A DNA stretch of 63,509 bases, counting the filler, from Octopus bimaculoides (lineage: Eukaryota): the NCBI RefSeq assembly GCF_001194135.2. It is 3 parts of 3 records of this genome, joined end to end, with 100 filler letters (N's around TTAATTAATTAA, not from the genome) between each part and the next. Parts side by side here need not be neighbours in the genome. Positions count along the whole stretch, not along the records: positions 1 to 13,003 come from NW_026306484.1; 2 more parts are not named here. One strand, 5' to 3'. A program made the translations under genes and the position numbers. Positions 86 through 11,068 of the stretch are shown in pieces (position 1 is the stretch's first letter; each line of letters opens with the position of its first letter). A model generated the notes under the pieces. It saw nothing but the letters and a program-made list of their open reading frames with translations. It was not told the DNA's origin and did no database searches.

Positions 86-275
86 TTAAATACTGTCCTC
101 ACCAGATGTGAAGTGGTAACCCATGTAAAGCTGGTTGTCGAACGATTGCTCGCCCTTCCTGATCGGCTGTGGCGTGAGTTCCGTCTCTGATTCGGGCCTC
201 GGGGTACTGCTATGGTCAGGTGATACGGGAACTGGATGTCCGATGTTCACAATTGGGCACAGCTTTTTGGCACGC
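86..275 (-). CDS. Cytoplasmic-tail exon (terminal if TAA at 88-86 is used)
   Basis: Strong acceptor TCTTTCGCTCCCAG|G; phase 2 matches the TM exon. Encodes (R)RAKKLCPIVNIGHPVPVSPDHSSTPRPESETELTPQPIRKGEQSFDNQLYMGYHFTSGEDSI*. A possible internal donor G|GTGAGG at 103/102 makes the 3' end uncertain. Confidence 0.85.
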
Positions 276-399
276 CTGGGAGCGAAAGAGAAAGAGTGAG
301 AGAGAGAGAGAGAGACAAAAGCAAGAAAAAGAGAGAGAGCAAGCACATAACAAGAACATGGAACAATTTTGTATCATTATCCCAGTTGTTGTTGTTATT

Positions 400-1010
400 T
401 GTGTTTGACGTCTGTTTGACGTGCGTTTGATGAATGCTTAGTGTGTTTTACTTGTTGTTTGATGCATGTTTGTGTGTTTGATGTGTGTTTAGTGTATATT
501 CTTTGTTGTTTGAAATATGTTTGATAGATGCTTGATGTTTGTTTGATATATGTTTTATGAGTGCATAGTGTGTGTTCTTTGTTGCTTGATGTGTGTTTGA
601 TGTCTGTTTGATATATGTTTGATGTGTGCTTAGTGTGCGTTTTTTGTTGTTTGATCTATGTTTGATGTACATTCAATATGTGTTTGATGTGTTTGGTGTA
701 TGTTTTATGAGTACTGATGTGCTTGATGTACATTCAATATGTGTTTGATGTAAGTTCGATGTGTGTTTCATGTATGCTCACTATGTTTGATGTGTTTGGT
801 GTATGTTCGATGTGTGTTCGATACATGTTTGATGTGTTTGATGTATATTCGATGTGTGTTTGATGTGTATCCAGTAAGTGTTTGACATGTCTTTTGGTGT
901 GAAGTGATGTATGCTTGATGCATATTCGATGTTTGTTGGATGTGTGTTTGATGTATGCTCAATGCATATTACACACATGTTTGATGTTGCTTCATATGTG
1001 TGTTTTACTG
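400..1010. repeat. Degenerate TGTGTTTGA-type minisatellite
   Basis: Recurrent tgtgtttgat/atgtttgat units. The His/Thr/Gln-rich ORFs here are a by-product. Confidence 0.8.
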
Positions 1011-1339
1011 TGAACCCTTGCTGATTTGAATGACATGCTTAATGGCTGTTGTGATGCAGATAATATTGTCTGATATTATTTTGTTTGATGTCATCTGCCT
1101 GATGTGTAGTGGACTTCATGCTGTCGATGCGTGAGCGAGGCGTCTGACATCATAATTTCAAGGTGTAACAATGACACCTCACAAAATATGTATCGTTTAA
1201 TATTAAAATTGGGTTTGGAAGGTGGGTCTGTAGCAGTAGCATTGCAGCAGAGTCGCAGTAGCGTTGCAGCGGTGTTGCAGTTGTATTGCAGGAGCAACAG
1301 CAGTTCAGCAGTAGCATTAGCATTGCAGCAGCATCAGAA

Positions 1340-1750
1340 CAAAAAGTAGTAGTAGCAGTAGTAGTAGTAGTAGTAGTAGTAGTAGTAGTAGTAGTAGTAG
1401 TAGTAATGGTGATGATAGTAGTAGCAACATCAGCAGCAGCAGTAGTAGTAGTAGCAGTAGAAGTAGTAGTAGTAGTAGTAGTAGTAGTAGTAGTAGTAGT
1501 AGTAGTAGTAGTAGTAGTAGTAGTAATGGTGATGATAGTAGTAGCAACATCAGCAGCAGCAGCAACAGTAGCAGTAGTAGTAGTAGTAGTAGTAGNNNNN
1601 NNNNNCAAAAAGTAGTAGTAGCAGTAGTAGTAGTAGTAGTAGTAGTAGTAGTAGTAGTAGTAGTAGTAGTAATGGTGATGATAGTAGTAGCAACAGCAGC
1701 AACATCATCAGCAGCAGTAGCAGTAGCAGTAGTAGTAGTAGTAGTAGTAC
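1340..1750. repeat. (AGT)n-based compound minisatellite, about 3-4 units
   Basis: The unit (AGT)n-AATGGTGATGATAGTAGTAGCAACA-(GCA)n recurs near 1400, 1520 and 1670; a 10-N gap lies inside. Confidence 0.85.
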
Positions 1751-2098
1751 ATCCAGGCATTATTGGACTTTGGGCTAAGGGCACACCATGTGACTCCCAA
1801 AAATAAGCAAATTTCTGAGAATGGCATATTTATGTGTGTGTGTATCTTTCTACCTCTCANNNNNNNNNNNNNNNNNNNNNNNNNNNNNNNNNNNNNNNNN
1901 NNNNNNNNNNNNNNNNNNNNNNNNNNNNNNNNNNNNNNNNNNNNNNNNNNNNNNNNNNNNNNNNNNNNNNNNNNNNNNNNNNNNNNNNNNNNNNNNNNNN
2001 NNNNNNNNNNNNNNNNNNNNNNNNNNNNNNNNNNNNNNNNNNNNNNNNNNNNNNNNNNNNNNNNNNNNNNNNNNNNNNNNNNNNNNNNNNNNNNNNNN

Positions 2099-2403
2099 AA
2101 CTGCAGGAACTCTACCAAATCAGATTGGAACCTGGTGCTGCCATCTGATTCGCCAGTCCTCAGTCAAATCGTCCAACCCATGCTAGCATGGAAAGCGGAC
2201 GTTAAACGATGATGATGATGATATATATATAAACTACACTCTTGGAGTGGTTGGCGTTAGGAAGGGCATCCAGCTGTAGAAACTCTGCCAAATCAGATTG
2301 GAACCTGGTGCAGCCATCCGGTTTCACCAGTCCTCAGTCAAATCGTCCAACCCATGCTAGCATGGAAAGCAGACGTTAAACGATGATGATGATGATGATG
2401 ATG
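2099..2403 (+). mobile_element. Two tandem copies of a retroposon 3' tail ending in (GAT)n
   Basis: AAATCAGATTGGAACCTGGTG...CCAACCCATGCTAGCATGGAAAGC.GACGTTAAACGATGATG at 2099-2221 and 2243-2403. A related tail is at 7303-7450. Confidence 0.7.
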
Positions 2404-2438
2404 TGCCGATAGTAGAAAGGATTATTAAACTGGTATCT

Positions 2439-8460: not shown

Positions 8461-8499
8461 GAAGGAAATAGACACCTGAGAACAAAAGACGATGCTTAC

Positions 8500-9093
8500 C
8501 TCACAGGTGGGCCCTGTCCAATCTTCTGGGCAAATACATGTGAAATGTCCCTGACTGTTTAGAGTAGGGTTTTCTTGGTAACAGGTCCCATTATTTGAGC
8601 AGGCGTTCAGAACACAGGGTATCATCTTCATGTCACACAATGGGCCACCCCAACCAATGGAGCATACACACTCGTATTGATCATGCCGCTCTATACAGGT
8701 GGCGTTCTCGCTGCACTCGTTGTCCAAACAGAGATCCCGCTCGTTGCAAGTCGGGCCCGTCCAACCATGAACACACACGCACTTGAAGTCATTGACGAAA
8801 TCCAGGCAGATGGCCCCGTTCTGACACGCACCCGTTGCGCATTCATTGATGTTCGTTTCGCAGTTCTGGCCTGTGTAACCGGCAACGCATTCGCATGTGT
8901 AGCTGCCATCTGTGTCGTGGCACGTGGAGTTGTGTTCGCATGGGTTGTCGATGGAATCAAGGCATTCGTTGATCTGCACCTGGCATAATTCTCCAGTATA
9001 ACCGGTCGCACAGATGCATTTGAAATCAGCCTGCAGGTCAACACATGTCGCTGAGCCAACACAAGGGTTGCTGTCACACTCATTGATATCAAT
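8500..9093 (-). CDS. EGF-repeat membrane protein exon (5 EGFs)
   Basis: Poly-T acceptor TTTGAAG|ATT, donor GAG|GTAAGC. 594 nt, phase 0-0. Encodes IDINECDSNPC...WTGPTCE, with cbEGF motifs DINEC, QINEC and NINEC. Confidence 0.96.
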
Positions 9094-9799
9094 CTTCAAA
9101 AAAAAAAAAAAGAGACAAAGAAATTCAAAAACAGAAAGAAAGCTACATAAACGTGGCTGTATGGTAAGAAGCTAGTTTTATCACCTTTCAAGTAACTCAG
9201 AACAGGTAAAGGTAAGCTTGCCAAAGTTTAAAGCAGCTTAAATATGGAGATTAAGATTGTTTGGTATTGGATATTCATCACGTACAGTGTTCCTAGCCAA
9301 TCTAATCACCGTCACAGGAGGACAGTCGAAATAAATAAATAGACAAAAGCCTTTCACTTTTATAATATTCTCTAACCAAGTAATAACACTCAATTACAGC
9401 ATATAAATAAATAATAAATCAAAAATTGTAAAAACTACTAAAAAATATTCTCTAATGCTAATATATGGCCATAGAGATTAAAAAAGTATGGAAGACCTTA
9501 CATTTACGAGGGAGCTCTGGGCAAAATATTATTGTGCATGACCATCCTTGGGATATAAGAAATGTGTGTAAAGTTTAATGAAGATTGGTTGAGAATTGTT
9601 AGTCACTATACACACACATACTGCAATTTATATATACTAGATATAGCTGGTTTAACTATTTAGCATTCAGATTCTTCTGTCAAATGCAATGCTTAATTTA
9701 TTCACGTTGTTTTGAATTAATCATGGATTATCTTGTTGCTTTGAGATTTCAATGATGTGATCGTTTATACTCTCAAAAACACTAAAGAGCACATCTCAC

Positions 9800-10041
9800 C
9801 TCACAATCCTGTCCCTCCCAACCATCCATACATTCACAGAGGTAACCCATGTGTTGGTCAATGCAGGTGGCGTTGTTCTGACAGGGATGCGGCTGGCAGT
9901 CGTTGATGCTACTCTCACAGGTGATTCCTGCCCACCCCTCTGTACAGTTGCAATGGAATGTTCCACGGCCATCAGTGCATGTCCCATTGTTGGTACAAGG
10001 GTCAGATAAGCATTCTAATATCTCGGTCTCACAAAAATGAC
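9800..10041 (-). CDS. EGF-repeat membrane protein exon (2 EGFs)
   Basis: Acceptor TTGCCACAG|GT, donor GAG|GTGAGA. 242 nt, phase 1-0. Encodes HFCETEILECLSDPC...INDCQPHPC...GQDCE, in frame with both neighbours. Confidence 0.95.
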
Positions 10042-10352
10042 CTGTGGCAATGGAAAAAGAAAAAAAAAGGATTATATAAATATACACACATATACATACC
10101 CATTTATATCTATCTGTCTGTCTATACATACATGTATATATATATNNNNNNNNNNNNNNNNNNNNNNNNNNNNNNNNNNNNNNNNNNNNNNNNNNNNNNN
10201 NNNNNNNNNNNNNNNNNNNNNNNNNNNNNNNNNNNNNNNNNNNNNNNNNNNNNNNNNNNNNNNNNNNNNNNNNNNNNNNNNNNNNNNNNNNNNNNNNNNN
10301 NNNNNNNNNNNNNNNNNNNNNNNNNNNNNNNNNNNNNNNNNNNNNNNNNNNN

Positions 10353-10740
10353 GTGTGGTAAGTAGCTTGCTTACCGACCACATAGTCCCGGGTTCAGTCC
10401 CACTGCGTGGCACCTTCGGCAAGTGTCTTCTACTATAGCCTCGGGTCGACCAAAGCCTTGTGAGTGGATTTGGTTGACGGAAACTGTAAGAAACCCGTCG
10501 TATATATATATATATGTGTGTGTGTGTGTGTGTGTTTGTGTGTGTCTGTTTGTCCCACCACCATCGTTTGACAATCGATGTTGGTGTGTTTACATCCCCG
10601 TAATTTAGCGGTTCGGCAAAAAGAAATCCGATAGAAGAAATAGCTAGGCTTACAAAATATAAGCCCTGGGGTCGATTCGTTCGGCCAGAGGTGATGCTCC
10701 AGCTTAGCCGCAGTCAAATGACTGAAACAATGAATGAATA
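10353..10740 (+). mobile_element. SINE family B, near full length
   Basis: TGTGTGGTAAGTAGCTTGC head, GGCACCTT.GGCAAGT CORE-like motif, internal (TA)n(TG)n and CAGTCAAATGACTGAAAC tail. Confidence 0.88.
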
Positions 10741-10945
10741 AATAAATAAATGAGTAAAAAGAAAAAAAAAATGGTTATTACAGTCCAAGGGAGAAAATTC
10801 ATACCTCAGACAACTTTTGTCAAAGTTATTTCCCTTGGACTTCTACATGCGTGTGCTTGCGTATGCATGTGCTTACATATGTGTGTATAACACAACAGCT
10901 GATATTGGATTCTAGGTGACAAGAATGAAAAACTTTAATACTCAC

Positions 10946-11068
10946 CTGTGTACCCTTTTGGACAAACACATGTGTAGCCCAAGTATTTGTCCACGCAAGT
11001 GGCATAATTTTCACATTTATGAGAGACGCAATCATCCACACTGGCAAGGCAATCTGCAGACGTCCACC
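10946..11068 (-). CDS. EGF-repeat type I membrane protein, first visible exon (1 EGF; upstream exons missing)
   Basis: Acceptor TTATCAG|GG at 11069/11068, donor ACAG|GTGAGT at 10946/10945. 123 nt, phase 1-1. Encodes (G)WTSADCLASVDDCVSHKCENYATCVDKYLGYTCVCPKGYT(G). It starts mid-EGF, so an upstream exon is required. Confidence 0.92.

Follow-up and report, generated by a model that had tools for sequence, protein, structure and literature searches.

A probable Delta-type Notch-ligand paralogue with a juxtamembrane module in Octopus bimaculoides

What kind of membrane protein is encoded where eight exons of the Octopus bimaculoides genome spell out a run of EGF repeats? The window analysed here, that is, the whole stretch of 63,509 nucleotides (nt), filler included, taken from assembly GCF_001194135.2, carries at positions 86 to 11,068 a gene that an earlier note, made from the sequence alone, had described as a multi-EGF type I membrane protein fitting none of the classic Notch-pathway architectures. 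The part of the window in question (positions 1 to 13,003, from NW_026306484.1) is the reverse complement of locus L001 46615-59617 (scaffold LGKD02011600.1), and has a gap of 3742 N on its upstream side and one of 1100 N on its downstream side, the scaffold as a whole being heavily gapped. Our analysis indicates that the product is probably a member of the DSL (Delta/Serrate/LAG-2) family, namely a Delta-type Notch-ligand paralogue whose DSL domain and second half of the MNNL domain presumably lie in assembly gaps. The gene belongs to a clade separate from octopus Delta1, Delta2 and Jagged.

The gene model was rebuilt mechanically from the exons proposed in the earlier note, and agrees exactly with them. 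Eight exons on the minus strand, like all the features of this gene, of 123, 242, 594, 43, 160, 187, 98 and 190 nt, each with an acceptor AG behind a pyrimidine tract and a donor GT, give 1637 spliced nt holding a single open frame of 544 codons plus TAA, the other two frames containing 18 and 30 stops. Exon 1 (10946-11068) begins mid-codon: its acceptor is of phase 1, and the opening 2 nt finish a Gly codon. Its first six codons, WTSADC (11049-11066), encode the C-terminus of a DSL domain, and most of EGF1 follows. Exon 2 (9800-10041) encodes the end of EGF1 together with EGF2 and EGF3, and exon 3 (8500-9093) encodes EGF4 to EGF8. The three gaps within the exon-bearing stretch, one between exons 1 and 2 (10146-10352) and two in the last intron, between exons 7 and 8 (1596-1605 and 1860-2098), are all intronic, and none of the exons adjoins a gap. 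The product is colinear with its Argonauta hians orthologue from the DSL end through the transmembrane (TM) helix, with three indels of one or two residues and none at the exon 1/2 junction, and the acceptor and phase of exon 8 are identical in the Argonauta genome; therefore, no coding sequence was lost in the three intronic gaps. The spliced product is also 100% identical to part of a 729-residue O. bimaculoides RefSeq protein (P0001), automatically named "fibropellin-1".

Fifty cysteines are present in this product: 48 in eight six-Cys EGF units, one that is the last Cys of the DSL domain, and one in the tail. A Pfam scan returned eight EGF stretches and nothing else above the cut-offs, and the O-fucose consensus was found in seven of the eight EGFs. 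After EGF8 come a Pro-rich linker (IPMSLYLPSTPQPP; exon 4, 7631-7673), which is conserved in Argonauta and in a second relative (P0003), then about 120 Cys-free residues, a hydrophobic helix and a tail. The Cys-free juxtamembrane module is encoded by exon 5 (5649-5808), which contributes its first half (strand 1, helix 1 and strand 2), by exon 6 (4666-4852), which contributes the second half (strand 3, helices and a YPVY motif), and by exon 7 (3478-3575), which supplies the module end (NWAQS), the TM helix (3483-3560) and the initial RR of the basic stop-transfer stretch. The helix, YWYIILLVVIVTMFVVFVVLVAIMIL, comprises 26 hydrophobic residues and is followed by RRRAKK. The part of exon 8 common to both readings of the 3' end (103-275) encodes the cytoplasmic tail with the motif FDNQLY (125-142); the tail measures 64-120 residues and contains no repeats. 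The order of parts that had been described, 8 EGFs, Pro linker, Cys-free module, TM helix and tail, is confirmed, and the protein shows tandem EGFs ahead of a single TM helix, in type I topology, one of the features by which the DSL-ligand family is recognised. The last EGF and the TM helix are about 135 residues apart, a Cys-free distance occupied by the folded module.

Only the back two-thirds of the gene is held in the window, and the N-terminus is cut. Three upstream exons of the RefSeq model lie outside it, the one with the signal peptide about 38 kb off and the other two 6.7-8 kb off. Residues 26-99, encoded by these exons, match positions 1-78 of the 157 positions of the Pfam MNNL profile with 40.5 bits (cutoff 22.5); in Notch ligands this domain forms a C2-like N-terminus. 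The match breaks off mid-domain, and the second half is not in the assembly. The impression that the protein fits none of the classic architectures was therefore largely an artefact of truncation and gaps, since the signal peptide and the first MNNL half are found upstream of the window.

The closest relatives indicate what is absent. Argonauta P0002 (63% identity) and P0003 (51%) both possess a DSL domain (Pfam PF01414) above the Pfam cutoff, placed after MNNL and before the EGFs. The contigs that encode P0003, 2.7 kb long and assembled from two independent runs (SRR20545807 and SRR25158142), contain no introns, and P0003 is therefore a transcript; it reads continuously through MNNL, DSL, 8 EGFs, linker, module and TM helix, in the domain order of the octopus product, and its similarity suggests that the source organism was a cephalopod. 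The DSL domain of P0002 ends in ...KICHEGWTSEYC (...ICHEGWTSEYC), octopus exon 1 opens with (G)WTSADC, and the Argonauta DSL exon ends in CATGAAG/gt, in a phase that matches the 2-nt overhang of octopus exon 1. This remnant, GWTSADC, and the fit of phase identify the acceptor at 11068 as the true one. DSL scored above the Pfam cutoff in eight further family members as well, and in the octopus assembly only its last six residues are present. We found no MNNL or DSL coding sequence in the upstream part of the window (11069-11524 and 12337-13003), and neither DSL nor second-half MNNL coding sequence in the rest of the assembled scaffold. The Argonauta locus is free of gaps, and there about 690 bp separate the end of the DSL exon from the EGF1 exon downstream, while the MNNL exon before it is another 600 bp away. 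As introns of this gene are 1.4-2.3 times as long in octopus as in Argonauta, the octopus DSL exon is expected at about 12030-12640; no such exon is present in the assembled part of this interval, which leaves the gap of 812 N just upstream of exon 1 (11525-12336). The octopus DSL exon is almost certainly in an assembly gap, most likely this one, and the exon for the second MNNL half would fall in the 3.7-kb gap beyond the window.

The RefSeq (Gnomon) model bridges MNNL exon 3 to exon 1 by means of an upstream CAG acceptor, and so translates 17 intron residues (LFSKFLSLSLSLLMLSG; about 117-133 of P0001) from 11069-11123 (minus strand). This stretch is an annotation artefact and not protein, and the join skips about 95 residues present in the Argonauta orthologue, which correspond to the second MNNL half and the DSL domain. 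RefSeq both misnames and mis-models the gene. Taken as it stands, this model implies that the octopus gene truly lost its DSL domain and encodes a DSL-less EGF membrane protein of the DNER/DLK kind, in agreement with a RefSeq protein that has no DSL match and with a window and an assembled scaffold in which no DSL coding sequence is found. However, the 17 translated intron residues, an MNNL domain cut mid-way, a GWTSADC kept at the Argonauta phase, and gaps of 812 N and 3742 N exactly at the expected sites of the two absent exons make such a loss very unlikely. The suspicion of a Notch-pathway ligand in the earlier note thus pointed in the right direction, but its DNER/DLK-like logic did not survive the DSL remnant in exon 1 and a DSL exon that is almost certainly hidden in an assembly gap; an upstream DSL domain, which the note had named as the contrary case, is found above the Pfam cutoff in the orthologues.

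How far does this family extend? Word-indexed homologue searches with the non-EGF C-terminal part or with the module alignment missed even the identical RefSeq protein and were uninformative, and the family count given here comes from an exhaustive profile search. Among 1.84 billion proteins the module profile recovered only 16 representatives at E <= 1e-3, two of them doubtful partial matches. The named members belong to Sinanodonta, Solemya, Mizuhopecten, Pinctada, Haliotis, Gigantopelta, Patiria, Acanthaster, Anneissia and Saccoglossus; the identifiable taxa are molluscs, echinoderms and one hemichordate, so that a possible restriction to lophotrochozoans, as had been supposed, does not hold. 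Nearly all of the module-bearing proteins have a DSL domain, often with MNNL too, before 3-11 EGFs, and DSL and/or MNNL exceed the Pfam cutoff in bivalve, gastropod, sea-star and crinoid members; the Acanthaster member P0132 is without DSL. Canonical ligands were too few for a tree of the DSL region, and for this reason the length of the DSL loop, the module and the tail motif were used as clade markers.

The third of these markers, a tail motif of the form F-[EDQ]-N-x-x-[YF] or N-P-x-[YF], was present in all 13 module proteins with a tail of at least 40 residues, and its strict form in none of the 114 other EGF proteins compared. The octopus tail has FDNQLY at 125-142 (minus strand), and an unannotated Argonauta exon encodes FDNRLY. 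This shape is that of the FxNPxY signal of the LDL receptor and the NxxY signal of integrins, which bind PTB-type and endocytic adaptors. In the accepted model, endocytosis of the ligand pulls on Notch and drives its activation, and it is on this account that an endocytic role might be proposed for the tail motif.

In the sea star Patiria miniata two module-bearing DSL genes are found at separate loci (L005 and L006, on scaffolds 13 and 30), and one Patiria product, P0084, ends before the TM helix and may be either secreted or the result of a truncated model. A sea-star Delta whose function has been studied has 10 exons and 12,804 bp (bioRxiv 10.1101/2023.01.09.523328), and no match was shown between it and the two module-bearing loci, which span 16.4 kb and 13.5 kb. 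In the literature searched, no DSL ligand was described as having a SEA-like or juxtamembrane domain, and the module-bearing ligand subfamily is apparently undescribed.

The module itself, Cys-free and of about 115 residues, aligns across cephalopods, bivalves, gastropods, sea stars, a crinoid and an acorn worm. An AlphaFold model of the module alone (pLDDT 82.9, pTM 0.77) shows a beta-alpha-beta-beta-alpha(-beta) sandwich, and the fold is predicted with confidence to be ferredoxin-like. The oddness that the first reading had sensed here stands: the module is real and conserved, absent from canonical Delta and Jagged, and unfamiliar to Pfam. An obvious idea is that it represents a divergent SEA (or Notch HD-like) domain, autoproteolytic or force-sensitive, as in membrane mucins of the EGF-SEA type. 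It has the same beta-alpha-beta-beta-alpha-beta class and a membrane-adjacent position after EGFs, and the turn G-E-x-V-T-x-V between strands 2 and 3 (D-I-S-V-V-R-V in octopus) recalls the G/SVVV site of SEA domains. Nevertheless, the Gly-Ser of the cleavage site is not conserved, Pfam gave no SEA (PF01390) match to the module even when E values as high as 1 were allowed, and nothing was returned when PDB sequences were searched with a profile. Two Foldseek searches against the PDB retrieved generic ferredoxin-like folds only (ribosomal S6, PII, CutA and designed ferredoxins among them), with E >= 0.014 and TM-scores <= 0.41, and no SEA domain or Notch HD was among the top 50 matches of either module model. 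An identity with SEA or Notch HD is thus unsupported by Pfam, the PDB profile search and Foldseek, with only the general fold class in common, and we consider it unlikely.

Another lead came from KIAA1549 (Pfam PF12877), which gave weak matches to the module plus TM helix of three deuterostome members (P0123, P0026 and P0035) at profile positions of about 156-291 out of 676. The scores were 24.1 bits in Saccoglossus (cutoff 24), 15.9 in Anneissia and 11.8 in Patiria, and no match was obtained in the mollusc members, octopus included. A relation of the module to KIAA1549 may exist, but as the match includes the TM helix and is perhaps partly driven by composition, it is a lead only.

Taken together, these data outline how the octopus protein might work. 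The full protein would consist of a signal peptide, MNNL, DSL, 8 EGFs, Pro linker, the module of about 115 residues, the TM helix and a tail with F-[DE]-N-x-x-Y. Its ectodomain would use MNNL-DSL-EGF to bind the EGF repeats of Notch, either in trans or in cis. Endocytic or PTB-type adaptors might be recruited by the NxxY-type motif of the tail, and the folded juxtamembrane module could be a rigid stalk by which shedding is controlled or force is passed on.

Several observations weigh against such a ligand. DSL coding sequence was not found in any readable assembled octopus sequence, either in the window or in the rest of the scaffold, and the presence of an octopus DSL domain is deduced from the orthologues, the six-residue remnant and the position of the gaps. 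The module has no significant structural neighbour, and the role proposed for it is for this reason conjectural. The DSL contact loop is divergent, RPRDDAFGH of DLL1 aligning to REGKP-GQH in Argonauta. The Phe of this loop reportedly contacts Notch in solved ligand complexes (Cordle 2008; Luca 2015); across the family this position is occupied by various residues and is not conserved, so that binding to Notch cannot be taken for granted. The EGFs that come first after DSL are ordinary, EGF1 being a six-Cys unit directly after DSL, and do not correspond to the atypical EGF1-2 of canonical ligands.

Such features would be expected if the protein were not an activating Notch ligand but a modulator or cis-acting ligand such as a cis-inhibitor, a decoy, or an adhesion or other receptor with a DSL-type head: the divergent contact loop lacks its key Phe across the family, EGF1-2 are not of the canonical type, and Acanthaster P0132 is without any DSL. 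On the other hand, MNNL and DSL score above the Pfam cutoffs in at least three phyla, the O-fucose sites are kept, and so is a tail motif of endocytic type, which fits a ligand that pulls. We regard a non-activating role as less likely than not, and maintain that a Delta-type Notch-ligand paralogue is the probable identity of the octopus protein.

A wider and more tentative proposal is that the module-bearing proteins might form an ancient class of DSL ligands in Bilateria, the third after Delta and Jagged, with the ferredoxin-like juxtamembrane domain and the F-[DE]-N-x-x-Y tail as its defining marks. So far unnamed, this class would have been retained by molluscs and ambulacrarians but not by chordates and ecdysozoans, which would have lost it, and its membrane mechanics would be unlike those of classical ligands. 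If this were true, shedding control, force bearing or adaptor-driven (and not only ubiquitin-driven) endocytosis would differ from what is seen in classical ligands. A clade with a unique juxtamembrane domain and tail motif in protostomes and deuterostomes would change the picture of the bilaterian ancestor, and would serve as a natural experiment on the effect that the region of a ligand near the membrane has on pulling, shedding and endocytosis.

The 3' end of the gene can be read in two ways. Exon 8 has a donor, G/GTGAGG, at 103/102 from which RefSeq splices to a last exon at L001 70129-70296, about 10.5 kb downstream of the window, and this exon is conserved in the Argonauta genome with 64% amino-acid identity and a good acceptor. 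Read-through of the same donor (86-102, minus strand) supplies the rest of the Gly codon that starts at 103, followed by -EDSI and a TAA stop (86-88), so that the C-terminus is either ...NNNDDG (RefSeq) or ...FTSG-EDSI. Intronic nt 7-17 past the exon 8 donor are identical between octopus and Argonauta at 10 of 11 positions, as compared with 2-4 of 11 at five other donors, and the identity ends at the in-frame stop, TAA in one species and TGA in the other. This conservation suggests that -GEDSI is an alternative C-terminus and that both ends are probably in use. The short tail that had been proposed ends in EDSI; this end is conserved, but it is only one of two conserved ends, its stop arising by read-through of a donor. 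The -GEDSI end presumably has the form of a putative class III PDZ ligand.

Other variants of the tail were noted in relatives. The Argonauta model P0002 omits two conserved tail exons (L002, about 47838-48040 and 55460-55591), which are the homologues of octopus exon 8 and of the last exon, and has in their place a distal exon of 57 nt, which points either to an isoform or to an error of annotation. In octopus, read-through of the donor after the TM exon (3475-3478, minus strand) would stop at once (CGG CGg taa), giving a tail-less form that ends in ...ILRR. The P0003 transcripts (L003, about 2230-2270) end 12 codons after the start of the post-TM basic stretch, and this short-tail form looks like a read-through of the donor after the TM exon.

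Several kinds of repeat were noted in the introns. An interspersed repeat of about 250-360 bp occurs in three copies with 72-92% identity (4987-5240, 7049-7319 and 10353-10715), in three different introns and each beside a (GT)n/(AT)n tract, one of them adjoining the gap 10146-10352. Two families of short interspersed repeats are also intronic: the first (2149-2222, 2323-2396 and 7370-7443) has a (GAT)n/(GAC)n tail and resembles a short interspersed nuclear element (SINE), and the second is found at 2479-2590, 3729-3804 (inverted) and 3980-4064. By eye, 3350-3440 resembles the reverse complement of a tRNA (with a ...GGTTCGATTCCC-like box) and is probably a tRNA-derived SINE head; ARAGORN called no tRNA over the window. 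Large intronic arrays of simple repeats occupy 400-954, 1345-1749, 6198-6370 and 7686-8492. They comprise an 11-nt TGTGTTTGATG minisatellite, (AGT)n flanking the gap 1596-1605 on either side, (TAGA)n, and a minisatellite rich in purines, with 21/28/70-nt units, which takes up most of the intron between exons 3 and 4. An inverted repeat (11165-11237 and 11293-11365), with 73-nt arms that are 78% complementary and 55 nt apart, is located in the intron upstream of exon 1. Rfam matches to mir-1277 and mir-297 at 6943-7027 reached 34 bits against gathering scores of 81-90 in TA/TG-rich low-complexity sequence and were dismissed as noise; the tRNA and Rfam scans of the window thus gave nothing real.

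How does this protein compare with the known systems? Notch, Crumbs and Serrate/Jagged had been set aside from the start, and our analysis upholds their exclusion. No receptor features of Notch (LNR, NOD/NODP or ankyrin repeats) were detected, Pfam giving EGF-type families only. There is no LamG match as in Crumbs (Pfam), and the C-termini are DDG or EDSI and not ERLI. Fibropellins are secreted proteins of the sea-urchin apical lamina with an avidin-like C-terminal domain; they share with the octopus protein the tandem EGFs from which its automatic name arose, whereas the octopus protein combines a head of MNNL/DSL type with a TM helix and a tail in the cytoplasm, and gives no avidin match (Pfam). 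DNER and DLK1 resemble it as type I membrane proteins with EGFs and a short tail, but both lack MNNL, DSL and a juxtamembrane module, while the octopus gene has MNNL exons and a DSL remnant.

Serrate/Jagged ligands share the predicted MNNL-DSL-EGF head, and several members of the family have been automatically named "jagged-1-like". On the MNNL-DSL stretch alone the score to JAG1 structures (63.8 bits) is near that to DLL1 (55.1 bits). In Serrate/Jagged at least 16 EGFs are followed by a VWC or Cys-rich domain; the octopus protein has 8 EGFs, its stretch from EGF8 to the TM helix contains no Cys, and Pfam gave no VWC match.

The likeness to canonical Delta/DLL1 is closer, and comprises the signal peptide, MNNL, a predicted DSL, a run of EGFs with O-fucose sites, a single TM helix and the lack of VWC. 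Residues 28-258 of Argonauta P0002 can be aligned over their whole length with solved structures of MNNL-DSL-EGF from human DLL1 (4xbm; E 4e-30), JAG1 and fly Delta. Could the gene simply be the octopus orthologue of canonical Delta? The order MNNL-DSL-EGF-TM and the fact that DLL1 is the best PDB match by full-sequence E-value would agree with this idea. Yet JAG1 scores as well as DLL1 on MNNL-DSL, and in most family members the last DSL loop has 8 residues, compared with 7 in Delta. Furthermore, the octopus protein has 8 ordinary EGFs, whereas Delta has 9 of which EGF1-2 are atypical; its last EGF is separated from the TM helix by about 135 residues, among them a folded module, as against about 25; and, in place of an ATEV PDZ ligand, its tail has the family-specific F-[DE]-N-x-x-Y motif. 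According to Gazave et al. 2017, canonical Delta is defined by at least 9 EGFs with conserved spacing, including the atypical EGF1-2, and by an ATEV PDZ-binding C-terminus (PMC5356439); with 8 EGFs and no ATEV, the octopus protein departs from both. Octopus Delta1 (XP_014769856.1, which ends in ...SATEV) and Delta2 (XP_014771450.1) are different proteins, listed together with Jagged (XP_014779348.1) in a survey published in Sci Rep in 2021 (PMC8166818), and orthology with canonical Delta is hardly credible.

The gene under study has been missed by the published surveys of lophotrochozoan ligands. It is absent from the tables of the 2021 survey (PMC8166818), which is to be expected because its RefSeq model lacks the DSL domain that the survey searched for; a scallop member of the family, XP_021376117.1, is among the 138 DSL-family genes listed there. 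In neither this survey nor that of Gazave et al. (PMC5356439) is the module clade named or the octopus gene listed, and both are silent on the module and on the tail motif. Within the scheme of these two studies, the gene fits the loose class of "Delta-like" or "DSL-like" ligands of lophotrochozoans, with DSL and EGFs and neither Delta nor Jagged. Gazave et al. stated that no Delta-like protein can be traced to the bilaterian ancestor (PMC5356439); in contrast to this statement, the clade defined by the juxtamembrane module is found in both protostomes and deuterostomes.

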